This document shows, piece after piece, positions 44,082 to 64,000 of a stretch of 64,000 bases of DNA; the stretch's first letter is position 1; each line of letters begins with the position of its first letter. The notes below the pieces were generated by a model. That model saw only the letters and a program-made list of their open reading frames with translations. It was not told the origin of the DNA and did not search any database. This DNA is from Trichoplax adhaerens (Eukaryota > Animalia > Placozoa): the NCBI RefSeq assembly GCF_000150275.1, contig NW_002060960.1, positions 1 to 64,000 on the forward strand. The letters run 5' to 3'. A program made the position numbers and the translations under genes.

Positions 44082-44513
44082 TTCCAATAACCTGGCAATC
44101 AATAATGAGACAATAGAGAATGGAATAGGCAATCCAACATTCGAATCAAGTGTTAAAATAGGTTGAGAGAGAGGGAAATGGAACAATTTTCCCTGCGATT
44201 TTACCAACGAAAGTTGCGCCTCCCTTTTGACGTCTGTAGAAGACTGTACTGAAGATTACAATGTAGACTATAAGTAGTCGGGCTACGGCCAAGCAGAGCC
44301 CAGTAAGGGACAATAATAAGTGTATCTTGGCGGCGAACGCTGTACAAACTATGCAAAAGCTATGTCACCTATTGGAACTCGATGGTGTGGACACACTGAG
44401 TACAGTGTACAGTGTACAGTGTACAGTATAAAGTGCCCATACTGTACTGTATAGTACTGTACACCGAGAGAACGTGCAGAATTGATAGCATTTCCTTGAT
44501 CATTTTACTCAAA

Positions 44514-44885
44514 CGAAAGTACTGTACTTGAAGCAAAATGACGAGCAAAAAGAGTTAATCGGACTCCACAAGTCCACATTGAGACTGTACACTACGGATC
44601 ACCATCGAATGGGACAACTAAAATAGGAACGGATTGCATTATCGTTAACACGTGTAGTACAGTCATGGACTTCTAAAGTTATGACAGGATTTCGCCGATC
44701 ATTTGACTCTACCGAAAGTACTGTACTGTACTTGAAGCAAAAAGACGAGCAAAAAGAGGTAGTCGGACTCCACAAGTCCACATTGAGACTGTACACTACG
44801 GATCGCCATCGAATGGGACAACTAAAATAGGAACGGATTCCATTATCGTTAACTCGTAGTACAGCCATGGACTTGTAAAGTTATG
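44514..44885. repeat. Two highly similar ~200-bp tandem units upstream of ARPC1
   Basis: cgaaagtactgtac...tcggactccacaagtccacattgagactgtacactacggatc...catggactt.taaagttatg at ~44514 and ~44713. Confidence 0.95.
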
Positions 44886-47800
44886 GCTGTTCACAGCATA
44901 AAGTTCATTTCCTCTATGGATGGACTTAGCCATACTGTTCTGGGCGAGGCCATTTCTGTAATAATTTGCTTGGGCCAGGACTCAGGACGTCCGGACAATA
45001 TTTTGTGTGCGAGTTACGGACGCTAGGACAGCTAGAAGCGTAGAAAGAAGGGCGTTACAATAACAGAGTTTCTCTTGAACGCTTGTGGGTCTCGCAGTTA
45101 TGGCTAATTCTCAAGGCCACCCATAAAATGATTACAACAGCCAGCTACTGTCAGACTTTGTACTCGATGCTTCATATTCTGAAAACGGAAAGATCACCTA
45201 GATAATTAGATATACATTAGTCCTTGTGATATTCGTATGGTACGTGGAATATTGTTCTTTTAGTAGGTACATGGACTACATTGTACAAGTGTACAATAGA
45301 CTCCGCAAGTTCATGAAAAATGCTTACAATTTACCTTACTACAGATCACTGTCTGGCAAAATGAATAGGGAAGTTTACTACGTTTGTCAATTTTGTATAA
45401 CAGTGATTTACTGTATAATGGTGCCCATTAACTGTCATCGTGTGTGTTTACAGCATTAGTCCTGTTATAGTGATATACGTACTCGAACTGACATCAGAAC
45501 GCTACGGAAACTGTACAGTAATTGAATACCTGTTCTTTTCTATGTGCATCTAACAGTGGATATCTCATCCAGCCAGCTATGCTGATAAACTATTATGCGC
45601 TGTTGCAGATAGAAGGTTATCTGATCTCCGGCGATAGGGCATTATTATTGTCAACAAGAGGATTTCTTTCATTTGGGGATAATTACAGTAATACGCGCGA
45701 TTGAAAGAAAGAACCTACGTAACATCATGCATTTGTAATAAATGCGTCTCAAAAGAACTATCTTAGTCAAATGTTATTTTCGAAAAGACTTTTATTACAA
45801 GGTTTTAAAAATAGTAGAGCAATGATCAATTACTACTAGAATCTAGTGTAAAATCGAGAGTATTCCGAGCTCAAAGCGAAGTGAAGTCTCTTCTCCTATG
45901 TAAACATTACGTTAAATCCATTTATGGCAACTTGATTAATCTACAATCGGACATAAGTCATCAAACAAAATACTTTTCTCTAATAGTACATCATTATTTT
46001 ATACAATCTAAATCATTCTACTTAAGATGTCAATACTCTTCTATTAACATCTAGGCCCTTTCTCCGATGGGCATCTTAACAACTACGATGTTTCTAGCTA
46101 CATAAATCTTGTACCATAATTAGTCAACTGGCTACTATTAGTCATCAACAATTTCTAATATAGAAGTTAGCAATCATCTAATATTAGCTTCACGATAATA
46201 TCTATTCAAAGCAACCTAACTATATCAAATATAGCTATCCGTTTAATCAAACATGGGTGCATCAATACAGAATTACAAACAACAAGTCGTAGTCACATAT
46301 TCTACTTTGATTGAGCTGGCTTCTAGCAGCGTTTCATAGCTAGAGCGGCTAAAATAGGTTACAAAAAAATTGAAATTGGTTTGCTAGATAACTATTTTAG
46401 CGTCTTTAAAGTTTAAATAAAAAAAGTAGTAAATACTATGGTGAAATTGGAGCATTTCTAAAGTAACGTTGTCGCCACACAAGTTATGGCATAATAGCAT
46501 AATGTTCACTATCTGTACTAAATCCCGTCGATCTAGCAAGTCTAGCCTCCAATTCACTATTATTCAAACCATCTTTCTAGCCGTAGCTTCTTCATTATGC
46601 TACCATTTTATCTGGTAGATAACATTAGATCAGCACGGAAATCCTTACTTTAGGCAGCTTTAGGTGTTTCTGCGACAAAGCAAGGCACCATTTCATTCAA
46701 TGCGATCCATGAGCAGAAAGAGATTCACTTAGTGTAAGCGTATTATTTAAGTTCGTTCTCTTATGCCAACAATAAAACAATACCTTGTACCGTTTACTCT
46801 TCAATGAAACCTGTGAGAAAATGAAAATCTATGCAGTTAATAATTATCTCTTGCTACCATGATAGTCTGCTAGAGTTCTGCTACATTTTCATCAATAGGT
46901 TAGAAAGTTTGAGCTGAATGTCCCCGGGAGCTGCGCACATTTCTATATGCAAAATTTATTCCTTTATTATGCATTTTATAAACTCACGAACCCTGTCAAT
47001 TAGGGTATACTTTATGATATGCAGGGCATGTCATGATTCATTCTGCATTCTAGTTCGCATATTTGCTTAGTTTCTGATGAATTTCTAGCCATTAATGACG
47101 AAACGCTAGGGCACTAGTGCTAAAGTAACCAGACTTGTCATTGAGCAAAATGTAATGCAACATTGTTACGGGCTATGTATGCCAAACGGGCAACATATAC
47201 GATGCTCGAGGGCAATGTAGATGTTATGGGCCATGCATATATGACGATCACGGTTAGATTAAAAAAGGTGTAATGAAATGGTGAAGTTCATTAGCTGCAA
47301 TATCCTTACCTAATTAAAGCCCTTAACATGACTTGGTCAGACACCTTGTCACACACCACTAGAGACAAAGTAAATCTACACAAGTAACGCTTAAGAAGAG
47401 CGCCTCTGACTGACTTAAAGAGACAAGATTAGCTATATCACCAAATAGTTCAGTTCCAACGTCTGAATACTATAGCATAGTTATAGCGTTACTGATAGTG
47501 TAGACAAGGTAGTTAGAGAATCGCAGCTATTTATTACTGAAGAAATCTTGACAACCAAGATTGTAGTCTTGATAATTCAATAGCGATTGACAAACTAGTT
47601 GTCTAACTAACCGACTAACTAACTAACTAAAAAGTGGTCTAGTAATTAGAACAAGCGTCCGTATCGTAATATACCTTTATAGAAATTGTGCAATAGCGCA
47701 CAGCAATATAGAATGTAATTAATGACTAACAACGGCTATGATAAAAACATATTCAGCTACCTTTAATTAATGGTGTAATTTAAAATTATTGTTCATATTT

Positions 47801-49198
47801 GCCTATTTAAAATGGAAGTCTGTCTATAATATATTTACAGCTGGAATCATCCATAAAAGTACCTAAAGTATAATCTGAAATAAATCTTCGTCTAATGAGT
47901 ATCCTCTTCATCTATTAACATAACGTAACAATAAAATAAACGTGGTAAAAACCGATAGTATGCATGACAAAAATAATATTATCAAAGTACCAAACTCACA
48001 AAGAAATTGTTATTTTTGAAATTCGAAAATAATGATTAGGTACGCCAGGGATCTTAATTAATCATATAATGTAACGATCGAAAAAATGATATAAATTTTT
48101 GCCGATTTTCTGTGCTTATTAGCGTGCTATTTTATTATTAAAAGTAAAATAATTCGATAGAATGATTATCTCTGACCGTATTCCTGACAACGTTAATCAC
48201 TACCTATTATTACATTTAATTTCAAAAGAAAAACTTTACAAATGGCTACAAGTTATAGACGTAATATCCAGTAGAAGAGATCATCTTTATACTAGTGATA
48301 CTTATAAAATATGAGTTATTTATTTACTGTCATTTATTCCGGAGGAAAAGGCAGACGTGCTATCATAAATAAGAAATATTATTGTAAAAGGAGCGCAAAA
48401 TATCCCTATTTATATTTGTTTTAGTTAAGAAATAAACTTTGATATTATTTAGCGTCCTTGATATCTAGCCCGTGAATACCAAATTACTTCTAGCAGTTTC
48501 AAGTACAACATGTTACTGTAAGTTGTACGTGTAATTACGCCATCGTATGCATAGATGGCAACAGTTATTATGGTCCACTCTGCTGATTGTCCATTACATA
48601 CTGTAGCTGAATTTGACAAAGCTCGCCTTTACTTAGGTACGAAATTACTCGCGTCTTGCGATAATTGCTCTTCCCTAGCTGTGATCAAATCCTGGCTGAT
48701 TTTAATTATGAAATAATTGATACACATGATTATTTTAGTCACCATCTTAGTAATAACGATAGCTGTAACAGGAGTTTTTTCTTTCCATTCTCAGCCGATT
48801 ACCTTTGAGTCAATAAAGTATGGAGTGGCTACTCCAGTGCATCTTGGCTTCCAGCCGATCTTGCTCTATTCGGTTTGAGACTAGCTGCTAACTTCATGAT
48901 CTATTACCAATTTTTTATGAATACTGTACTGTTTTTATATCATCTGATTTTCCATGACCCCCATGAGACATCTTAATCGCTTAGTCATTGTATAAATATA
49001 GAAGGTATTACCGTACTAGGCGGTCAATGGTGTTCTGCTGCGAGGCAACAATCAGCCATCTTATTTAAAAAGACGGGAAGCAAAAGCCAAGGTATTACAG
49101 TTCTACTACATAATTGTATCAACGTTTACTAGCAGTAACTTCGATATTAGAATTTCTCTCTCTACTGAAACTTCAAGTTAAAAGAAGAAGCTTTCATA

Positions 49199-50880
49199 AT
49201 GATGAAAGTGGTTATTTTGGTCTTGTTATCCACCCTACTCTTTACAGGTAAAAGGGGAGAAACATCTGCCATAAAATATCAAAATTTTATGAGTTTCTCG
49301 AACTTCATGTTTAATTCGCTGCTACGGTAACTTTAATATCAAATAATAAACTCCAAGGATTCGCAGATTGCATCCCAGTACCTAACACTCATTAAAATTT
49401 ACGACCAAGCAATCTACATATACATAAAATAGAAAGAGATTTTTTCATGTAATAAACTACACAATAAATTGTATTGTGCTATTAGAGCCAAGATACGTAT
49501 AATTACAAATTTTCAAACCATGTGCATTGTAAAGCTAGTATACTCATATTATTATATTTTGCAGTAAATTAGCTAGTAGGCATACACGATAGAATTAAAT
49601 ATTTAGTAAAGTTATAATTTGATAATGAATTTAATCTTGTTTTGCTGTAGTTGTCATAGCCGACAACGCTAGGAGAAGTAAACATTGTAATAGCTGTATA
49701 AAAAAAATTCAAGGAGGAATTGCCTACATGAACAGGACGTCAACAAGGGTATCAATTTATAGCTATAAAGATGATACTTACCAACAATGCATACAAATTA
49801 TTTAAACCATTAATTTCGAAGATAGTCTACTAGTAAAGAAATCATCGACATAATAAATATTACTAAGCTATTAGGGAAGAATAGTTACAGGGTGAATTCA
49901 TTTATTTGATTTATACCGTACAGTTACTTTCCTACTTAGCATTACAACATTCAATTTTAGTCTGCTTCTAAAGCATCATTTGCTACTATTAATGTGTCTT
50001 CGATATTATGATTTTAATTTTTTTTAGAACTTATTGTGGCAGATACTATTATTTTAAGCTAATTGCAATTATCTAAGTCAACTATTAAGTACCGTATAAA
50101 ATGATAGAGCTAGCGAAATCTTCTGTAAATTATTTACTGTTTATACTTTCAGAGCAGTATCAAGAAATTTTTGACCAATTTTTGCTCTACATCGGGACCT
50201 TATAAACGATTGGTATTGATATGTGATGATTGCAGCTAATTTACGGTGGCAATATGTGTTGAATTTGTAATAGTAGTAAGAAGTACTCGTATATGTGCCA
50301 CATCAGAGATATGCTCAATGTTAAATAACTCAAAATATGAGTTAATAATAGCGAACTTAAGAAAATGTATTCATTACATAATAGCACAAAATGTATCAAT
50401 TGAACGATTTTATGCAATTTTCAATTATTTAGATGCATGATGCCTTATTTTATTGCTTACAATGTTTCTGATTTTCAGTGCGATAAATACGTAATAAAAT
50501 ATTTTTCAAAGGTAATTACGACCATCAGTGATTCCTTGGTAAGTGAAGAATATCTTCAATTTTACTGGATATAATAAAATCACTTAATGAATCTCTTCTA
50601 GCTCTATCTTTACTAAACATCTACATTTCGCTTTTGGCCCTTTAGCATAGCATAGTCAGTAGTCATAAATCAAAAAGTTTAACCGTGCAAATACGAGAAT
50701 TCTAATATAGCCTACGATAAGGAGAATATTAATGTTCTGTTTTAATATTCTTGTCAGAATCCGCTCGTTTGGTGCCAGAATTGGGGAAGTTGTGCCAGAA
50801 GTTCAAACTTAAAAATGGTGCAGAATTTAATAGAAATTATGTCTCATGACCCATCATTAATCGGAAACGATCGCAATTAA
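49199..50880 (+). CDS. Secreted saposin-like protein 1 (single SapB domain; NK-lysin/amoebapore/caenopore type), 129 aa
   Basis: Exons 49199-49247, 49651-49748, 50153-50212, 50479-50538 and 50758-50880 (all GT-AG, in frame): MMKVVILVLLSTLLFTVVIADNARRSKHCNSCIKKIQGGIAYMNRTSTRSSIKKFLTNFCSTSGPYKRLCDKYVIKYFSKVITTISDSLNPLVWCQNWGSCARSSNLKMVQNLIEIMSHDPSLIGNDRN. Signal peptide plus six Cys in SapB spacing. Confidence 0.9.
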
Positions 50881-50916
50881 ATTCATTTTATCTAGTCTAT
50901 AATCTAGATTGCAAGC

Positions 50917-50980
50917 ATATTCACTAACTTTTCTTTCTATGATATCATATTCACCAGCTTTTCTTTCTATGATATCATAT
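50917..50980. repeat. ~30-bp tandem duplication in the SAPLIP-1 3'UTR
   Basis: atattcac.a.ctttttctttctatgatatc occurs twice. Confidence 0.85.
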
Positions 50981-53900
50981 GCGAATTCGAGTAATATAGT
51001 ATTGTTGCAAATAACTGAAGTAATAGTTTAACTATGACTAATATTAGCAATTAGGAGTTTAAGATCACGAATTGAAATTAGGTGTTGCAGAAAATTGTGT
51101 CGCTACTTTACTAAGTTCTTTACAGTGGGTGAATTTTAGCAGTGCTTGCAATACAAAAAAGTAGAAAAGAGCATTTACATCAATCATAAAATTGGATTGA
51201 TACATAAATAATCACATTCTTTCTAATTCATTTTGTTCCTTATTCGTCATTTGATTACTTAAGGCATTTTAATGAATAAAAATTCCAATTTTGCAATTTA
51301 GAGATGACTGCAATAATACATATTTCTTTGTCTCAATTTTATTTGGAAAATTCAACATGATAGTCTTACTGAGTCCTACCGTACAAAATAAAAGCTTAGA
51401 CAATCAATAAAGTCTTTCTAGTTGTTTTAAACACACTTTATTAAAAGAATCGGTATTATAATAACAATCCAGAATTAGAACGTGCAGTTTGAAGGTATAC
51501 TATAACTTACATGTTCGGTCAATTACCAGAACATTTGAAAAAAAATAGTAGACATGGTCTAAAAATAGTATTTAAACTGTTGGAATGAAGATAATATCGT
51601 GGACGTTAGTGAATAGAATTTATCTCATAGGAAATTCTACCTCTAGAGATACGAATGGTATAGCATTTATAAGATATTTAAGATCAATTACTAGTAATTA
51701 TGAAACTATTTCAGGTCTGCATCGCAAGTACGATACATTGTTATTCTCTCTTGAATGGGTTCTTCATAATTATATTAAATAAATATCTGAAAAGTCACTG
51801 TAATAAACTGACTGATAAATATCGTAAACAGCAATTAATTTAGTATCAACGAGAAAAGTACATGCTGAAGTAAGCGATTAAAGAGACTTTGCTCTGTAAT
51901 CCCCTTAATCAGTAGTAAGAAAAAGCCTGTTTAATGCACACGTAAATTTATAAAATTATAAATATAGTGGCAGTAAATTGACTATATTTTTTTAAAACAA
52001 TTACAAGTGCAGCGTTAGTTCTTTCACTGATATAAAGGATGACATAATATTATTCGCTAGCATGTACGTATATAAATGAGGTCGAGAAATAAATAATTCT
52101 ACATAGAAAATAAAAGATGGCATAATAGACTACAGCGTAGCTAAACCAGAAATTAAAAATAGCTCCCTGAAACTAATTTACTTTACAAGCAATGTGACAA
52201 AATTAACCTCCATAGAATAGTTTGTCGATATACCTAGATTTATTTATGATTGTGAGAAGATAGTTTTTCAAGTTTATCTTGGTAAATAAGAAAGCTAATC
52301 GAAAATTAAAGCTACTATAATAACAATTTTTTACTGTATAAGCGTTCAATATAACTAATTCACTCTAAATTTGATAGTAAAGGATTAGTTTTGTTATATT
52401 TCAGTTGTATTTATGAAATATAGCTTACATTCAAGAAAGGAATATGATACTGCGAATAGCATATTCTTTCTTTAACACCATTCAGTATACGCACCAGAAG
52501 ACATTTATGGCGACTTAATAAGCTTAATAAAAGTTGTTATTGTTGGTATTAAGGTGGCTTTAGCAATTAAAAATTTCAGTAAATCATAAGTTAGACTGCT
52601 AAAAGAAAATGTTTTCCTTATTTCATAGTCCTATGCATTAGTCATCCGATAATCACAATTACTACCCACTAAAAACAGCAACCTAAGCGATTGCTGCTGT
52701 TGCTAGTAACTTTATTGTATAATATCTTATAATATTTGTCAAGTGAAAATTTCCAGTTTGATACTTGTATCTGACTATGCAAATTTAACTTCAACAAAGT
52801 GCCGCAGGAGGCTAAGGTACTTAATTATGCAACATACCTACGTTATACTGTACAAGGCTGTAGAAAAATAGGTTCTAGAGGTGAGATCCTGATAATTATA
52901 AATAACATAATCATGAATAAGATGGCGGCGCTAGACCTGACCCGGAATGGACCAGCATGGTCGACGAAACTACATTTAGGCGTTAGAATAATTAAGTGCT
53001 AGTAGTGAATAATTTTGGAGACGATAGCCGTAGCTTTAAGTGAAAATGTAGGAGGGAGTTCGAGATCTAGCTATGAGTACTTTATTTGGTTTAAGTTTTA
53101 CTGCTATAATATTCAACGATAATTTTAAGTCGTAAATCGTTTTTTATCAGCTAACATTGAGAGTCATTTACTTAGTTACCGTTTCATAGTAGGGATGGAA
53201 ATCGTACTTTATTACAAAAATATCACCTCTTGACCTGCTATTGAGTAATCCTTCACTTTAGCCACTACCTTGCTTAGTTTTATCGTTAGAATCTACATTA
53301 ATGGCAGACTCTTAAGTGATTCAGTCCCTACCAGGAACGCGAGGAATGCATTAAGCATCTAATTTTTTAAAATCGTCCTGATTCTTTATAAATGTTCAAT
53401 TTCACCGCCGCAAAGATACCTGAGTTTCTCTGCCTTATTCTGCAAAGAAATGCTCTTCAAAAATCTATACTGAATTCTTAAAGACTTATTTAAACGTATT
53501 AGAAAAGTAAAATGATGCAACATTATACCCGAACGAAAAAGTAAATGCCCAAACGAATTGCAAACTGCAATCCATGGTTCTTAACTGCCTTTATTCTATT
53601 AATTGCTGTTTCTCAATCACAATTCTACTATCAGTTTCCGCGATTTCTCAAAGTAGACATCTTCACAAATACAGTAGAACATTGAACAATCTACTATAGG
53701 GTTCATGGCCTCTTTATTAATTTCTGCAAAGCCATTCCCGTACTTTGTTACCGTTGATTACGTTCTGCAGCTAGGTAGTAAAGTATATGGTATCTATCAT
53801 TGCATTTTCAGTAATTATGTTATCGCTATCAATTAATTGAGTCAACCAGAATGTGTAAAGTTGAGAAAGCCTTCTTGATTAATCTAAATTAAATCAATTT

Positions 53901-54614
53901 CTTAACTAAAGATAAAATATTTCAATAATTTGCCTATTAAATCAATTACTTGATTAGCCAAATTTGCTGGAGCCGTTACTTAAGTCATTAGATACTGCAC
54001 TGAAGTAACAGCATGAATTGATGAAAATTCATCTATGATTACAAGTAAGGGATAAGACATCCAAAATATTATTCGAATTTTTGCCATTTCTTTCTATCTT
54101 TTAAGTAGTAGCTTGCCGAAAGTAGCTCGCCGAATTACCAGCATTGATAGTAAACAAATGGGCTTGCTTCTATTGAACACTTTTATTAATTCAACTATTT
54201 TTAGGGAAATAGACTGTTGATTTTTGGTTTCACTGTAAAAAGGAAATAATGCCACATACAAATAACAACCCTAGCGTTAAGTAAAGCTTTTGTTTTTAAT
54301 TTGAATGAGCATTAAAGTCGCTTTGCTTGATTTGTAAGGAATCAGCAGCCATTTATCCCGCGAAAATTATGAATAGGGTAAGTAGTAAAATAAGTGAATA
54401 TTAGTTTTACTAAGGTTTCTTTGTTAGTGTAATCGATTTTAATTAGAGTATAGGATTGTATTTATTTTATATATTCATTAAATGCTGTTGAAAGCAATAT
54501 GAATACATTACGAGTAAAGAGGCACTAGGAACCTATAAGAAGAGCAAATAAGAGTCTATTCTGACATTTTTTCTTTTGGTTCACGGAAGATCCAAGTTGG
54601 GAACGATTTAAAAA

Positions 54615-56388
54615 ATGATGAAATCGATCATTTTGACTCTCCTATTAACTATTTTCTTGTCAGGTAAATTTAAGGCCCGTTAAATTTCTATCTCTAAAGC
54701 AAAACCAGTTCCTTTTCCGTTGTACAGGAAATTATATAAATTTAAAAGTCCAATTTTTAACTCAAAGTGTTTCACTGAATGTTTTCTTAGAACTTTTATG
54801 AATATAATTGACATAAATTACTATAACGTATTATCGCATTTAAGTCTAGTGAACGTAAAATTGAATGAAATTGTTATGTTCATGCATGATATTTATTGCT
54901 GATGTAATGGATAACGTTAATATTAATCATCCAGATTTAGATAGGATTCTTTATATAGTGTGATGGTCTTAAATTAGTAATCGACACTCGAACATGAATG
55001 CCTAAAAGCTAGAGAGAGAGAGCTAGCGTAAAGTTGTTGATTCGATTTGATCTCGCTGCTCGTTAGGTAGCTTAGCGACATTAATGTAGTTTTGTGTTCA
55101 ATTACTCGTTGGTAACTTTTAATCATAAATAAATAAATTATGACAAATCTACAAGTTTGATTTATTATTAATTACTTTGTCTCAACATCTATTTGATTAA
55201 TTCTATACTCCAGTGTACTACACTTGTAGACCGTGCTACACAAATTTAGAAAATAATAGTCTATAATGCATATCGTATGCTCTAGCAAATATATCCCATT
55301 TAAATGTCTACAATGTTGATAAATGTGGTTCTATCTGAAGTTTAATATCCATTTTGTACGGAATTGAATATACTGAAGCCGTTATGGCCGACAAGGGAGG
55401 AAGAAGTCCGTCTTGTGAAAAGTGTATCCACTCAATCCAAAATGCAATCTCGTACCTAAACAAAACATCGACAAGGGTACATAGTTACTGGACCAAAAAA
55501 TAATTTATTTACTATAATTCTTGATTAGTAATACACGAAATAAAATGCTTTTTTATCAAAAAATGTACTGATAAAGTTATTATTACGCTGTTATGTGATC
55601 ATTTAATAGATAGTGAGCTTGTAACTTGCATATATTTCATAGCTTCATTTTGAGATAATTTTATTTAGTCTGATTTATTCTAGAGTATCTCGAAATGTTG
55701 TAATTATCTTCATTAATGACTGAATATTTATCATAAAAACAGTATCTTTTATCACGTAGTGCAGCATTGGTAATGATTAAAGTTTTAAAAGTGTATTTTA
55801 AATGTACGAAATGTCGAGTGCATTTCGTAACAGTTAAGGAAAGTAAAATAAATATATCGTAATTGCTTTATATATCAGGAAGAAGTTCAGAAATTTTTTA
55901 CCGATTTCTGCTCTACCCTCGAACTTCCGGAGCGAATCTTTGTAAATAGAATATTAAATTGCTTGATTGGGATTTAGATCCGTTTTAGAATATTTTCCTA
56001 TGATGACAACGCTATTTTAAATCGTTTTAGTGCATTCCTTATGTAAAGAAGTATTTTCCACGGATAGTAGCTGCTGTAAACAAAATCGTTGTATGTAATA
56101 AATATTCAAAATTTAAGCTAATGTATAATTTAGTTTTGAACGCCGTCTGTATTTTATGATAAAAAATCCCCAAGCTTCATTATTACTTCAATATATAGCT
56201 GGACACCGCGTTTTGAATAATGTTTCCTTTATAGTAATCATATTACTATTTTTCCTGCATTATAGAATCCACTGGTCTGGTGCCAAAGTTGGGGATCTTG
56301 TGCAAAATCTGTAAACTTAAAGCAGTTTAAGAATATAATTGAAATTCTATCACGTAAGTCATTCATCGAGCAAAATCAGCGAAAGTAA
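54615..56388 (+). CDS. Secreted saposin-like protein 2 (paralog), 130 aa
   Basis: Exons 54615-54663, 55379-55476, 55879-55941, 56031-56090 and 56266-56388: MMKSIILTLLLTIFLSAVMADKGGRSPSCEKCIHSIQNAISYLNKTSTREEVQKFFTDFCSTLELPERIFCIPYVKKYFPRIVAAVNKIVNPLVWCQSWGSCAKSVNLKQFKNIIEILSRKSFIEQNQRK. Same exon phases and near-identical exon lengths (49/98/63/60/123) as paralog 1. Confidence 0.9.
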
Positions 56389-59300
56389 ATCTGCTATGTC
56401 TAATCTACAGGCTAATTCGTACATATAAATGTTAACTCTACCAAATGACGGCGATATTATAGAAACATAAGTTAAATGTATTCTTGATAACGATAGCAAA
56501 ACTTTCCGTTAAAAACTGCTTAAGATTGCTTTTGATGATCAGAAGCTAGTTTACATAATCTTGAATAAAGATCCGTATTGTAGTAAATTCGCACATCCAG
56601 CTACCTTATCCATTTATTTTTTATAGCCATTTAAACTTACTGTTCTTGAAATAAAAGAGCAGTGTAAAGAGATTTTGTCCTCCTTGCGGCTTTCATGCCA
56701 TTGGATTACTAGATTTTATCATTAATTTCCTGATATTATCAGTGTTTTCACTTATGATAAGATAGAAAATCATGTTATAGTTAAGCAAAGCAATCATAGC
56801 GCTTGCAATACCTCTTCTGATTTCGGCGTTCTAGGAGTAATCGTAATAAAGCAGATTCTAAACTAACGATTCATTAAAACTATAACTTCGATGTGTTTAG
56901 AGTTGCATGCTTCAATAAAGCTGTATAATTACGAATGATCAATGTAATTTAGAATTATAATACGCAATTATAGTCAATCTTTTTCTTACATTAGCGTTAC
57001 TTGAGCTCTAATGATTACTGCTCAAAGCAACATCAACTCAAGTAGTCATTGTTCATAGTAATAAAAAAATTGAAACGATTATTAGGCAAAGAATAGAAAT
57101 TGCCTTGTTGAGATCATTATAGATTGATAAGAATGGGCAATAAAATAGTTATTAATTTCTAGACACTCTTCGACCAGTTTAATATAGAATTTTGTATGCA
57201 GCAAGTGCTCATATCGTATCGTGTTAGAATAGTGTCCGTAGCTAATTTACTGCAAAATGTTCGATGAAAGAGAAATTCCGGATTTTAAATGAACAGTAAA
57301 GTAATTACTAAAATTTTTGATTCACCTTGATAATATCAATACATATTTTATAGAGATCATACGGAATCAATTCCATTAATAAAAGTAATTTTTCGTAACT
57401 ATTACTTTTGCCAAAGTTCCAGTTTACTATCGATATCGAGAAATTATATATATTTTGATGCATCAAGGCGAAAATCAATAAAGTTATTTTTCCCAGTAAT
57501 TTTATAACAAGGTATGAACACTTAGCTTGTTGGTTTGAATAACATTTGTTAATATATCAGGATTTCGATCACAAGAATCTAATATTATCTGATTGCATGT
57601 CTTACAAATATAGTATAATTTCATAGAAATTTGACGATATTGATATTAGACACAATTTAAAGATAAGATCAAGATAAAAGATTGATGCTAAGTCGTTAGT
57701 TTGATTAGACGCAATTTCCTCGACAGAAGTATTGCCATTATCTAGATGAAGTAAATATTGCATTTGGTTAAGAGGTATTCAATTATTCATATTGTTGAGC
57801 TTGTAAATTTACAACAGTCTACGATAAATATAAGGTTGTACCAATAATTATAGGTCACTGTAAAATTTAATTCAATGGTCGAGGTTACCATCATACAAAA
57901 TCGGTAGCATAAGGTGATGAAATCAAATGCTATAAACAAGAATTTAGATATCAAATGTTTAGGCTCTTTAGAATTTGTGAAAATGTACTAAGGAAGAGAT
58001 AACGCTACAAATATTAATTACGTTGCTAGATAGAGTAGCGATGATGTGCTGTTTTTAAGTGCTTTGTGTAGGAAAGCTAATTGGAAATAATCCTCAAAGC
58101 TGAAGTAAAATTAATTATGTTACTGTATAGGTACACAATATTGCAAACGATCATTTGCAATAAATCTCTTTTGCCCTATTACAGTCTTTTTTACAGAATT
58201 TAAGATATTATTTCGTTATTTTTTTATCTGATTCGTTAGTAATAATTATTCAAAATTCAGTACCAATAACATATATATCTACTTTACTTTTACATCGGTT
58301 AATTCTAGGAAATCTCAGATACTATTCATATTTGATGATAAATAGAAGGAGTCCCATTACAAATATTTAACATTTGCCAAGAAATCAATAGTTACATCAA
58401 GATTTAAATTTCCTAATGATGATATTACGTATTGTTGTATTCCATCGCCCTTAAGTTCATTAAAAAATACTATTAGATCAAAATTTTTAGGAATGATTTG
58501 AAATGAAAATATATCAAAGCTTAGTTTCACCAATAATCCTTTGACACTTTCTTATCAAATTAAAAAAAGTTAAAAAAACAAAGTCGTATTTAGCAGGATT
58601 TATTGGCGTTACAAAAATTATATAAAAAATAAATTCTTAAACTGTAAAATAAATTCAGAATTCAAAACATGTATGCCAAACAATCAAAAATATAAAAATT
58701 TAAAAGGCCAGCAAGCATGCATGATATTGATTACTTCCCATATCAAAAATCATTAACGCTCTAGCTATATTTATATCGTTCCTTCCGTAACGTAGCATAG
58801 TGGTAAAAATTTCTTTAATATTTAAAATTAAATAGGCCAATTGAAATGTAATTTTTAGATGTTCATTTCAGATCAATGATCTGGAATTCGATTTCTACAT
58901 AATACGAACCACTTAAGTTGAAATAGAACGTACTTACAGTTTACTGTCTGGCTATGAGAGATTTAAAAGGCTGCACATGGTTTAAGCGTTCAACAATTAT
59001 TACACCCATGTTCAAAAAATTTTCATTTCCTAATAGTCTAGCAATAAACACATTTAATGCAAAACTTATATTCAACTGATTCAATAAATTACTATATGCA
59101 CAGTAATTTTCATATTATAAATTTTTATATAAGTTCAACAATATCAAAGACAAATCCTCAGCACTAGGTCTACAGGTAGGCCATGGCATAAAGGTTCTGT
59201 AATGTATTATATATTCAGCTTGTTGTATTTTTTATCAAGGGGAAATAAACAGATATAAAACAAGCTTAGAAATATTGAGCAGTTTTACATATATTCTACC

Positions 59301-62300
59301 ATAATAATCTGTAAGTGAAGTAATTTAAACTTACTAGCCCAATTCTCTAATCATCCTTGATCTCAGTCATCTTAATACTTTATTCATTAGATCACGAGAT
59401 TATTGACACACATTTACTATATTCTAAACAGTAATATTCTCCAAAATCTTGGCTTTATTTGCGTTTACTGTGCTTCAATTATTATTGTAGTAATTATTCG
59501 ATACTGCTATTAAATTGCTAATATAATCTATAGAATTTTAGTACTTACCAACACAAAGGGATCTTTCTCGATTTTATTGCATTCTTAATTATTATGCTAA
59601 AGTTAAAGCCTGAGCCTAGCGCTACGGTGACAAGATTCTAAAGCTGAAACCCTATGGGTTATTTAAGGGAGCATAACGTGCTTTCCATGGCAGCATTAAC
59701 CGATTGTTAAATTATGCATCTTAAATGCTATCGATGAAATCTGCAGCAGTTTGCTTTCATCATTTCTCGATTTTATGCATTCTTAACTAGTATGGTAAAG
59801 TTAAAAATAAAGCAGAAAACAATCTGAGTATGGATCATGTAGTCACATTAATCACCTATATTTGGTATTGAACTATAAATTCGGTAAGTGATATCAATTT
59901 AAGATTCCACTTAATTCAAATGTAACAATCCTGTTGAAGGTAGAGATGACATATTAGCCATATTTGATAGTTCTAAGCTGACTAAAATTATTTATTCACA
60001 TCTCCTGCCAAATGTCATCTTCTCATCGTTACTTTCAATAAACGGCGCTACTCATAATTTAAGCTATTTATGGAAAAAGTAATATCAAAAGTTTACCTGA
60101 ACTGGCCCTGAAAATTAACTTTTAATCTCGGTAGAGTGGCCTAACACTCATGGGACTGATGGTAGATGATGTTTCATTCTTATGATGTTACCGATAGAAA
60201 TTTACTAAGTGAACATCTTAAAAGATGGTATCAATATCTAATCTTAATCTGCATAGATAAGAAGAATTTTAAAACAATCTCACATGCGAAAAATAAATGG
60301 TCGGCTCTTATGATGAAAAGAACATGCTTACATTTTTTTAGTTATAATATTACATAAAAAATACGTTGGCAGTACAGTAGGGGGGAATTTATCCTAACTT
60401 GGATCGGAAAAAGAGCCTATGGGGTAATTTGTGGCAATATTAAAGTTAAAATTACGACTTGATTATAACCATTTCGTGCATACAATTAAGCAATTGCAGA
60501 CAAATTCTGCACATTTAAGATTAATTATTATATTATTAAAGATTATTAGTAGTATCAGTTCGTAATTTTATCAAGCTAACGGTCTCTCTACGGATGATTA
60601 CGAATGTCATTTGGTAAGTTTTTACTCGGGCCGCTCTACTAGTTATTAATTTTGACCTCATACAACGAAAAGACTGCTTTCAGCCAATTTTTCATACCCA
60701 TTTTCCTGACTAAATTTGCCATCTTTTCTAGCTGCTTGGCATTTAATGACTAAATATAGACCATGGCTATAGCCGAATACTTTTAATTATCTAATTGGAT
60801 TGTTAGTTGCTATTCTAGACTGTCGTTATGCGATATACCATAAATAGCTCTTGATTGTGGCAAAGAACGTGCCATTGACCTAATAAGTAATATATTTTTG
60901 TTGGCGACGGCTTCTGTACAATCGTAAGACAAGTTAGGCGTTAGCTAGGGCCTACCTTTGATGATAACTTGTGCCACTTTTTGCTTAGTAAATATGCCAT
61001 TAAAGCATGTATTCTGTAATGACTAATCGTCAGATTTGAAAGATTTCACTGGCAGAGTGAAGATCTTGATTCACAAATTCCAAATTGCAAGATAGAGGTA
61101 AGTAAATATTAAATTAATTAAAAAGCGACATTCTTCCATCGAATATAGGGTAATTAATTTAAATTTCCGTTGTTTTCACCTTGTGCAACGGATTTGGTGT
61201 CAATTTTGTGAAGATTTTTGTACTAGTATCGTATCATGAATAAATATACTGCTACAGCAGTCGTAGAAGTTCATTCAAAATAGAATTAACAAAGGCTATC
61301 AATATCTCACATTGTTTTTATTGCTGATCATGAAGTTATTGAAATGATGGATAGAGAACAGATTAGGAGATGGACGATTGATTTATGAGAGAAAATCAGC
61401 ACTATCGTCATGTCATCCATTTAAGGCTGCAGAGGATACTTACTTTCTCTTGTTACACTTAAAGATTTCCGTCTGCAGTCGATTAAAAAGAGTCCGTTAC
61501 TAGATAGTTTCAAAAATCTAAGTATTATAACAGTGCCTTAAAAACTATAGTGCTTTAATCTTTGTTTTATCTTTGAGACTTCTTCTTACTTAAATTTGAG
61601 AAGAATTTGAAAGGGAACTATGCGTAACACTGAAACAGATATCGAAGGATACGTGTACGACTATTTCGTAAAATGTTTCATTTCCTTCAATACTCTAACA
61701 AAAAGAATTCTTAATTCTGCTGTTGGAGTGTAAAATAAATGCTGTGCTACTGTATAATTTATATCATAAATAGAATGTAGCCACTTAGTCTACCTATTCA
61801 TGACAACTGTTCTTCATCCAGAACAGTATCATCATGGAATAATTAGACGCGAAAAGGATATAATTAATTTATTAAAATTGAACGTTAATTATCATTACTG
61901 TTGGCCTAGACTCTTAAAACCTTTATCATTTCTATACTGCTTTACTTAATATTACTAACCTTACTTTCATGGGGATCACGTATATAGAGAACTATCAATA
62001 GCCGTGATTTTCATCCGAAATTTTATCATTTCAACGTAGCTTATCAGCAGTGCTATGATATATTATAAAATCAGAAGAGTTTAACTAACTATGCAAATCC
62101 TACCTCAGTTAAACAAGACGATCTCTCGTTACGGTTTTAATAGGCATATACTAATGACATCCTAATTTATGCAAGTTACGCAAATTGACTTAATTAATAT
62201 TATGATTTATAGCCTTAAATGTCAACTTTCTGCTTTTAAATTGCAATTTTAACTGTAGTAGATAGCAGCCATATTGCTATCCGTATTGCTGCACCTAGGG

Positions 62301-62722
62301 AGACTTACTGTAAAATTCCAACTTTGTTTATAGTCGTAGGCTCATTGATATACAGTATCATAAAACTATCTCCCCTAGGATTATAATCTTCAAGAGTCGT
62401 ATCCAAGCCTTGAATTCAGTATTTTATTACAATTTAAACGCTTTATTATATATTTTTTATTGCAGTACTTGCAATTGCATGTATGCAAATCATTGCACCA
62501 ATTGATTAGATCGAATGCAATTACTGCTGCAATTCGTACACTGCCATTTTATCACGACTAGGATTTGATTCATTACCGAATTTGTTCCTGATAACAAATA
62601 GTAACTTTTCTGCTACTTTTAAATTTACATTTTATCCATGTATTGCTTCTGGTGTTGTAAAGAGCTAAAACAATTTGGTTTTGTCGTAGGCACCTTCTAA
62701 ATTGCGCCTTTCTACTAATAAA

Positions 62723-64000
62723 ATGAATATTATGATTCCACAAATGGCTGGAAAAGTGAAAATCGATAAATGGTGTTATACGGAAATGAAAGTAGATCGC
62801 TATACTTACGTATGGAAAATAGAAAACTTTACTTACTGTCCGCTAAAGACGGGAGAATTCTTAAAAAGTTCAACTTTTGTAACTGCTAGCTCTGATAAGC
62901 TACAATGGTAAGGAAAATAATTAGACTATCAAAATCAACCTCTAATTCATGTATGATAATTTCTGCCAACTACACTAGCAATATGTTAAAAGTGAATATC
63001 GTTAATAGTTTTTACTTGTCATGGCTGCTGCCTATTGCTTTGTAGGTGTATGAAAATTAACCCAAGAGGACTGGATGAAGATTGTAAAGAATACTTATCG
63101 ATTTACTTGGTATTGCTTAGTTGCAATAAGAAGGAGGTCAACGCTAAATTTAAATTTTCCATCTTGGATTCTAATGAAATGGAAAAACGATTGATGGGTA
63201 AGCTATTCCTCCTCGAACAGAATCAGCAAAAGACAAGTCTGTTTGGGGCAATGTCTCAATGCCATACAATTACTGTGAACGATAAAACTCAAATATGTGA
63301 AGAATTTTTATCATAATTCCATAGGCATACGTGGGCGATACAAAGATTTTAGTGGGTACAAATTTTAATTTTTTGTCTCAAATCCAGCAGCAATTTATTA
63401 AATCTATCATCAATTTTACATTCTTGTCGAGTTCCAGATTAATATCAGCAGTTTTCGGTTTTAGCTAGCTGGGCGAATAGTTATTACGAGCAAGATACGG
63501 CCGTTTTAGATATATTTATAATCTTAGATTTTGCTGAAAGCGTTTTAATCTTTACAACTTCGGAATAAGTTATTGCCTATAGTGTTTCCATAGCCGTTAA
63601 ATCACATTGACCAGTATTAGTTGCTAGTGGGAAATGAATGTTGCAATTATATTTTTCTAGCAACCAAAAATGAACTATTATTAAATTACGGTATGAAACT
63701 ATCATCTATGGCCTAAAACTTGTCTTATGAAACTTCCAATAGAAAGTCAACGTGCCTACAGTTTTATTCAAGGCAAAGATTGGGGATTTAAGAAATTTGT
63801 GCGCCGCGATATGCTGATGGATAAAACGAGTGGATTTTTAACAGATAACCGTCTAACACTCTGCTGTGAGGTATGTTGCTAGTAGGATATTGATATTTAA
63901 ACATAGTAGGCCTTTAATCTTGATTTATATCATCGTGAAGATAGCTCAGATGATTTAATCCTAATTTTTCTTTCTAGATCAATATTGTCTCAGATCCGAT
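62723..64000 (+). CDS. SPOP: Speckle-type POZ protein-like (MATH domain; BTB expected beyond the window), partial
   Basis: Exons ~62690/62723-62907 (WCYTEMKV...WKIENF...LKSSTF...DKLQW), 63046-63197 ([21 protein letters not shown]...AKFKFSIL), 63742-63870 ([23 protein letters not shown]...LTLCCE), 63979-end. The start may lie in an upstream exon because the frame is open back to the acceptor at 62689. Confidence 0.9.

Follow-up and report, generated by a model that had tools for sequence, protein, structure and literature searches.

In amoebae, nematodes and the killer cells of vertebrates, single-domain saposin-like proteins (SAPLIPs) have been proven to act as lytic effectors, and two of them, NK-lysin and granulysin, are strongly basic proteins that attack anionic membranes. 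The lysosomal saposins A to D, in contrast, are acidic. Here, a stretch of 64,000 nucleotides of Trichoplax adhaerens DNA (contig NW_002060960.1, positions 1 to 64,000 of the forward strand; hereafter the window) was analyzed, in which an initial annotation had proposed a tandem pair of genes for secreted saposin-fold proteins, interpreted as putative lysins. With high confidence, the pair, designated gene 1 and gene 2, represents genuine and conserved tandem one-domain saposin-like genes that were missed or mis-modelled by annotation and that have a clear origin in a prosaposin-like gene. The two genes are further members of a known saposin-like family, and the new element here is their relationship to a prosaposin-like gene, whose first domain is their source.

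Gene 1 is located at positions 49199-50880 and gene 2 at positions 54615-56388, both on the plus strand, and the deduced precursors comprise 129 aa and 130 aa, respectively. The five-exon structure with exons of 49-123 nt that had been claimed for both genes was recovered with exact coordinates, with exon lengths of 49/98/60/60/123 nt in gene 1 and 49/98/63/60/123 nt in gene 2. All eight introns (8/8) are bounded by GT-AG, and the intron phases of the two genes are equal. Exon 1 (49199-49247 in gene 1 and 54615-54663 in gene 2, 49 nt each) contains the start codon and the hydrophobic core of the signal peptide, which consists of M-M-K and 13 mostly aliphatic residues in both genes; in gene 1, this exon has a mean Kyte-Doolittle value of 2.29 and ends in phase 1 at a GT donor. 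Exon 2 (49651-49748 and 55379-55476, 98 nt each) encodes the end of the signal peptide (V-I-A in gene 1 and V-M-A in gene 2, followed by D in either case), the Cys1-x2-Cys2 pair, an N-x-T sequon (NRT in gene 1 and NKT in gene 2) and the residues TSTR at its end. Cys3 is encoded by exon 3 (50153-50212, 60 nt, and 55879-55941, 63 nt), and Cys4 by exon 4 (50479-50538 and 56031-56090, 60 nt each) along with the motif C-x2-Y-V-x-K-Y in gene 1 and C-x2-Y-V-x-K-Y-x-P in gene 2. Exon 5 (50758-50880 and 56266-56388, 123 nt each including the stop codon) specifies NPLVWCQNWGSC with Cys5 and Cys6 in gene 1 and NPLVWCQSWGSC in gene 2, followed in both genes by a tail of 28 aa, which is basic in gene 2. 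The sequon and the NPLVWCQxWGSC end described in the initial annotation were both read in the translations, the latter as NPLVWCQ(N/S)WGSC. Each protein contains six cysteines, with gaps of 2/27/9/24/5 residues in gene 1 and 2/27/10/24/5 residues in gene 2.

The genome searched comprises 105,631,681 bp in 1414 contigs and includes the window as contig C1397. A search of this 105.6-Mb sequence with exon 5 of gene 1 revealed exon 5 of gene 2 as the sole other match (E=1.8e-10). The paired exons of the two genes are 52-69% identical at the DNA level, whereas the introns are of unequal length (403 versus 715 nt and 266 versus 89 nt) and cannot be aligned beyond the AT-rich background. In the comparison of the paralogues, the proportion of nonsynonymous differences (pN 0.33) is lower than that of synonymous differences (pS 0.575), corresponding to a ratio of nonsynonymous to synonymous substitution rates (dN/dS) of ~0.4 at a dS of ~1.1; the substitution counts, like the values for charge and Cys spacing, are exon-by-exon sums. 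Moreover, window positions 44459-64000 share 98.8-99.0% identity with a Trichoplax sp. H2 contig (NOWV01000219.1), so that the host is very close to H2 and is the placozoan on which part of the initial interpretation had been made conditional. The H2 copies of both genes are intact, with the same exon boundaries and with all splice sites and cysteines kept. Since the match of exon 5 is unique in the genome, the exons but not the introns are conserved, pN is lower than pS and both genes are intact in H2, the gene pair is not a product of chance. The degree of divergence identifies the tandem pair as an old duplication in which neither a reading frame nor a splice site nor a cysteine has been lost.

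Protein-level searches with phmmer and Pfam relied on P0002, a protein of H2 that is orthologous to gene 2 and covers the full mature region of gene 2 (113 residues) with four substitutions. The leading phmmer matches among PDB sequences were the N-terminal domain of SP-B (7mbk, E=1.3e-4), saposin D (5u85, E=3.6e-4) and prosaposin (9i63, E=3.8e-4), followed by the chains 2r0r, 3bqp and 2r1q with E-values of 4.6-5.9e-4; saposin-family chains account for 15 of the 16 rows among the PDB matches listed. The alignments of P0002 with the saposin D and prosaposin chains extend over ~75 residues without gaps, align six of six cysteines and reveal a shared C-x2-[FY]-V-x2-Y-x-P motif after Cys4. A family profile searched against PDB again had its best match in the SP-B N-terminal domain (E=8.3e-5). 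The ESM Atlas provided leads only: the clusters nearest to P0002 by features carry SapB_1/SapB_2 (score 0.88, 194 shared features), and the Atlas model of P0002, with a predicted local distance difference test (pLDDT) value of 0.63, has template modelling scores of 0.62-0.65 to prosaposin-like clusters.

Several results weigh against membership of the saposin family. The Pfam check suggested in the initial annotation gave no match to SapB_1 (PF05184) or SapB_2 (PF03489) at E-values up to 10, either with the single exons, which are too short for this purpose, or with P0002 and P0001, the second H2 protein described below. Likewise, six-frame genome scans with SapB_1 and SapB_2 did not list the locus of the gene pair, though saposin genes on C1393, C1403 and C1412 were found. 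Both models represent short half-domains, which in the present case are split further by introns, and the first domain of the parental gene introduced below also reaches just 13 bits. The AlphaFold2 model of P0002, calculated from what is effectively a two-sequence alignment, is poor (pLDDT 44.5), and a Foldseek search of PDB with this model returned nothing at E<=0.001, with murine saposin D at rank 2 (probability 0.87). The helices of the same poor model (residues 51-68, 73-86, 91-112 and 116-129) are placed as in saposin; model and Foldseek result were both given little weight in either direction. The evidence is mixed and, on balance, favourable, and saposin membership of the pair is regarded as supported by the sequence comparisons.

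A genome-wide search with a profile of exon 2 yielded one further match, at C1403:148208-148285 (E=1.7e-6), which belongs to a gene for three SapB domains and, at the C-terminus, one SapA domain, preceded by a signal-peptide exon (G000:C1403:147597-~151000, in L026 = C1403:146500-152500). This gene is considered prosaposin-like because its downstream pieces pass the Pfam cut-offs of SapB_2 (36.3 and 34.8 bits) and SapB_1 (30.1 bits) and reach that of SapA (22 bits); its first SapB domain is too divergent for Pfam. A candidate signal-peptide exon at C1403:147597-147648 comprises 52 nt, as compared with 49 nt in the pair, and is followed by exons of 98/63/60/123 nt with phases as in gene 1 and gene 2. 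These first-domain exons encode C-N-S-C...NKTSTR, KFF..FCS, C..FV.KY.P and NPSTLCQTLGMC. The pair therefore resembles the first SapB domain of the C1403 gene in exon sizes and phases, in the C-x2-C element, in the NKTSTR-type exon end and in the motifs KFF..FCS, C..[FY]V.KY.P and NP..CQ..G.C.

The differences between the pair and its presumed parent are concentrated around the 123-nt exon. In the C1403 gene, this exon ends with GAG followed by the donor gtatgt and is joined in phase 0 to the exon that opens the second SapB domain, and the gene goes on to encode a further SapB domain followed by SapA, so that two SapB domains and one SapA domain lie beyond the 123-nt exon. Gene 1 and gene 2, in contrast, end at the 123-nt exon: the last codon of this exon is itself the stop codon, and the donor GT is gone. 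Unlike the parent, both genes encode a tryptophan on either side of Cys5 as well as more positive charge, and the Trp pair and the position of the stop codon are common to gene 1 and gene 2. The 28-aa tails of the pair have no recognisable similarity to the parental linker in the alignment, and homology of tail and linker is therefore argued from equal exon length only. An interpretation of the first unit on C1403 as a separate one-domain gene, for which a signal-peptide-like open reading frame (ORF) just after the 123-nt exon was considered, was rejected, as an in-frame junction with the following SapB exon is obtained only via the GAG/gt donor.

According to the simplest history, the pair looks like a partial 5' duplicate of the prosaposin-like gene that was later duplicated in tandem. 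The signal-peptide exon and the four exons encoding the first SapB domain and the linker would have been copied from the 5' part of this multi-domain gene, and the copy would have gained a stop at the last codon of the formerly internal 123-nt exon before the tandem duplication took place. The locus would then provide a clean example of the birth of a stand-alone SAPLIP, in which the first five exons were copied and an internal exon was turned into a terminal one. Elsewhere in the genome, many further SapB_1/SapB_2 half-domain matches are present at C1393:454700-456300, 550400-550900, 558800-559000 and 566000-577000, apparently representing several multi-SapB genes or one large array.

With respect to the distribution of the family, a search of 1.84 billion representative proteins with a profile built from both exon-5 peptides resulted in just two real matches, P0001 and P0002, both from H2. 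At the sensitivity used, the gene family thus looks restricted to placozoans, in agreement with the lineage-specific family postulated in the initial annotation. P0003, a protein of 1283 aa with at least 10 near-identical repeats of ~95 aa, matched the exon-5 profile by ten weak stretches via C.YLGVCAKTGNGK and was rejected as a chance match boosted by repetition. A word-based protein search with P0002 returned only P0002 itself, and no T. adhaerens protein surfaced in the profile and sequence searches of protein databases.

P0001 (TrispH2_010046, 221 aa; L025:4187-6512) and P0002 (TrispH2_010045, 154 aa; L025:10001-12021) are encoded on NOWV01000219.1, and each is annotated as "hypothetical protein", carries no Pfam domain and is a singleton in its 90% cluster. 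The P0001 model contains an upstream extension of 104 aa, probably read through the 5' untranslated region, and uses an internal AG that drops 11 residues (33 nt of exon 4) including Cys4. The P0002 model starts from an upstream ATG, which puts exon 1 into another frame, and exon 2 is extended by an acceptor located 36 nt further upstream, so that the deduced protein is devoid of the signal peptide. Measured against the exon structure common to the paralogues, both H2 proteins appear to be mis-modelled. In the window, no ORF of at least 60 aa in the ORF list covers any exon of gene 1 or gene 2, and both genes are therefore invisible to a plain ORF list. The description of the pair as hidden consequently holds for the ORF list, but not for H2, where gene models exist at both loci, though in incorrect form.

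The window has a G+C content of ~32%. A 30-bp unit present in 2.2 copies (94% match) at positions 50916-50980 begins 36 nt 3' of the stop codon of gene 1 and is presumably part of its 3' untranslated region. Upstream of gene 1, a 204-bp unit in 1.8 copies (93% match) is located at positions 44519-44885, and this repeat is found in the H2 contig too.

On the basis of hydrophobicity and the V-x-A rule, both proteins are predicted to be secreted via a cleavable signal peptide that ends with V-x-A in front of D, leaving mature proteins of 109 residues (gene 1) and 110 residues (gene 2). Each precursor would contain a single SAPLIP domain of the saposin B type, in which three disulfides (1-6, 2-5 and 3-4) are predicted, and, as deduced from the N-x-T sequon, helix 1 would carry a potential N-glycan site at its end; in the P0002 alignment, the sequon is two residues off the NST of saposin D. 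The architecture claimed in the initial annotation, a signal peptide plus a single six-Cys saposin-type domain, is consistent with the exon translations, with the PDB matches at E-values of ~1e-4 and with the relative on C1403. The mature proteins are rich in basic residues, with 17 Lys+Arg versus 6 Asp+Glu in gene 1 (net charge +11) and 18 versus 9 in gene 2 (net charge +9). All of this charge is located in the domain in gene 1, and about half of it in the tail in gene 2. The signal for an amphipathic helix in the tail is weak, ~10% of shuffled sequences being as good. The C-termini are DRN and QRK, and an ending of the KDEL type for retrieval to the endoplasmic reticulum (ER) is present in neither protein.

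As an explanation of the locus as a whole, we favour with moderate confidence that gene 1 and gene 2 encode duplicated, secreted, cationic one-domain saposins of prosaposin origin that perturb membranes. The proteins would enter the secretory pathway and be released, or stored in granules, as small cationic helical bundles with a net charge of +9 to +11, and these bundles would bind and perturb anionic membranes in the fashion of NK-lysin and granulysin. The perturbation of membranes may serve defence or the breakdown of prey or microbes in the feeding groove. Judged by the analogy with the basic single-domain proteins NK-lysin and granulysin, as opposed to the acidic lysosomal saposins, the perturbation of membranes by a secreted protein would be the likeliest individual role. 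A membrane-lytic or antimicrobial role in the strict sense is plausible, and we propose it tentatively. The initial interpretation as a whole is partly supported, and for the putative role of the proteins as lysins, the high positive charge and this analogy are the only functional pointers.

The biology of feeding in placozoans provides a possible context for such a role. According to Mayorova et al. 2025 (PMC12013895), granules of lipophil cells lyse algae and cyanobacteria by means of components that, like their targets, still await identification. For the feeding groove, acidification to ~pH 6 has been reported (PMC12855814). That the pair is among the membrane-breaking components which Trichoplax releases into this acidified groove, and with which it lyses algae and cyanobacteria, is a speculative extension that we consider improbable. 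The candidate lysin proposed by Mayorova et al. as a possible helical pore-former is Ta 63996, a protein of 346 aa (PMC12013895), and an identity of this candidate with gene 1 or gene 2 was therefore rejected. The literature search revealed no link between placozoans and stand-alone saposin-like proteins and no naming of the H2 gene identifiers. The pair nevertheless represents a concrete and cheap-to-test candidate for the way in which placozoans lyse prey outside the body, since it is of the cationic single-domain SAPLIP type, is predicted to be secreted and was overlooked in one Trichoplax annotation and modelled incorrectly, with no domain assigned, in the other.

Some of the evidence argues against a membrane-perturbing role and has to be weighed along with the alternatives. 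Mayorova et al. report that lipophil metacells express no secreted protein other than Ta 63996 at a high level (PMC12013895), and the descent from a prosaposin-like gene as well as the saposin-like glycan site fit a role in lipid handling. In the latter case, the proteins would serve to solubilise or transfer lipids, either in lysosomes or in the lipid-rich acidic granules of secretory cells, or would assist in the digestion of membrane lipids after lysis, without themselves killing cells. This alternative has to be taken seriously in view of the descent of the pair from the first prosaposin-like domain on C1403, a relationship unseen in the initial annotation, and it gains from the presence of saposin D and prosaposin among the best solved matches, from the proximity of the sequon to the NST site of saposin D and from the N-terminal saposin domain of SP-B as the top match overall. 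The net charge of the pair, in contrast, differs from the acidic character of the lysosomal saposins A to D, the single-domain proteins do not need processing of the prosaposin type, and such fast amino-acid divergence would be expected of effectors rather than of activators with a housekeeping role. Taken together, a pure lipid-handling function appears rather unlikely, though it is the strongest of the rival explanations. The comparison of the window (H1) with H2 raises the question of whether the genes are decaying or functionless truncated copies of the prosaposin-like gene that drift almost neutrally with little or no expression. The exons differ at 12 positions in 783 nt (1.5%), as compared with 1.2% for the aligned 13.5 kb in total, and the surrounding non-coding DNA diverges at the same rate of 1.2-1.5%. 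Of the 12 exonic changes, about 9 are nonsynonymous and 2-3 are synonymous; gene 1 carries five changes, every one of them nonsynonymous (5/5), and three of these lose positive charge in H2. This divergence looks nearly neutral, and relaxed constraint fits equally well as diversifying selection on an effector, the difference counts being too small to decide between them. Moreover, the literature and the accessible portions of the supplements yielded no transcript, single-cell or proteomic evidence for the pair, which is not mentioned in the available parts of the supplementary files that accompany the placozoan cell atlas (PMC10580291) and the study of Mayorova et al., and a T. adhaerens protein is absent from the database search results. 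Relics of this kind would, on the other hand, hardly be expected to retain the five-exon frames, eight intron boundary pairs, six cysteines, the sequon and the signal peptide in copies as old as indicated by the dS value, or to display the dN/dS ratio of the paralogues and equally intact genes in H2, and we regard this explanation as improbable.

The pattern of cysteines also drew attention to saposin-fold proteins that act inside the ER, such as MANF/CDNF-like or Canopy-like proteins. The ARMET_N model was the top Pfam match of P0002, albeit below threshold (E=0.048, 14.5 bits versus a cut-off of 26.9 bits), and an ARMET_N cluster occupies rank 13 of the ESM Atlas list. A canonical ARMET_N gene, however, is located elsewhere in the genome, at C1414:9690435-9690797 on the minus strand, with 84 and 34 bits over two exons. 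Gene 1 and gene 2 lack a C-terminal SAP-like domain with CXXC, as they encode six cysteines in all and none after Cys6, their DRN and QRK ends provide no signal of the KDEL/RTDL type, and their closest relative in the genome is the prosaposin-like gene. A MANF/ARMET identity was rejected on account of the real ARMET gene on C1414 and the absent C-terminal domain, and an ER-resident function of this type is very improbable. Secreted, cationic one-domain saposins that perturb membranes stay the favoured explanation of the pair; should the genes turn out to be unexpressed or merely involved in lipid handling, the results would amount to just an annotation fix for an ordinary family member.

A comparison with the solved saposin B-type domains places the pair next to saposin D and prosaposin (5u85, 9i63, 2r0r, 3bqp and 2r1q), with which it shares the ungapped alignment, the six cysteines and a sequon near the end of helix 1. 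It differs from them in being encoded by stand-alone genes rather than excised from a polyprotein, in its basic instead of acidic character, in the shifted sequon, in the 28-aa extension after Cys6 and in the failure of the Pfam SapB models to match. The N-terminal domain of the SP-B precursor (7mbk, 6vyn and 6vzd) is the best solved match and has the motif NP..WC..WG.C at Cys5-Cys6 in common with the pair. As other SP-B entries score far more weakly (E-values of 0.008-0.2), the high score of 7mbk rests largely on this motif, and the SP-B N-terminal domain, unlike the single-domain pair, belongs to a three-domain vertebrate precursor.

NK-lysin, granulysin, the amoebapores and the caenopores are not represented among the PDB sequence matches listed for P0002 or the family profile. 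The layout of the pair, a signal peptide plus a single six-Cys SapB-type domain, is the same as in these proteins, and the high net positive charge is a likeness to NK-lysin and granulysin. The placozoan proteins are distinguished from the NK-lysin/amoebapore group by the potential N-glycan and the long C-terminal tail. Since the pair derives from a placozoan prosaposin-like gene, a likeness in role to the NK-lysin/amoebapore group would be convergent, and if the proposed function in feeding is true, gene 1 and gene 2 would show that placozoans independently invented an effector of the NK-lysin or amoebapore type for digestion outside the body.

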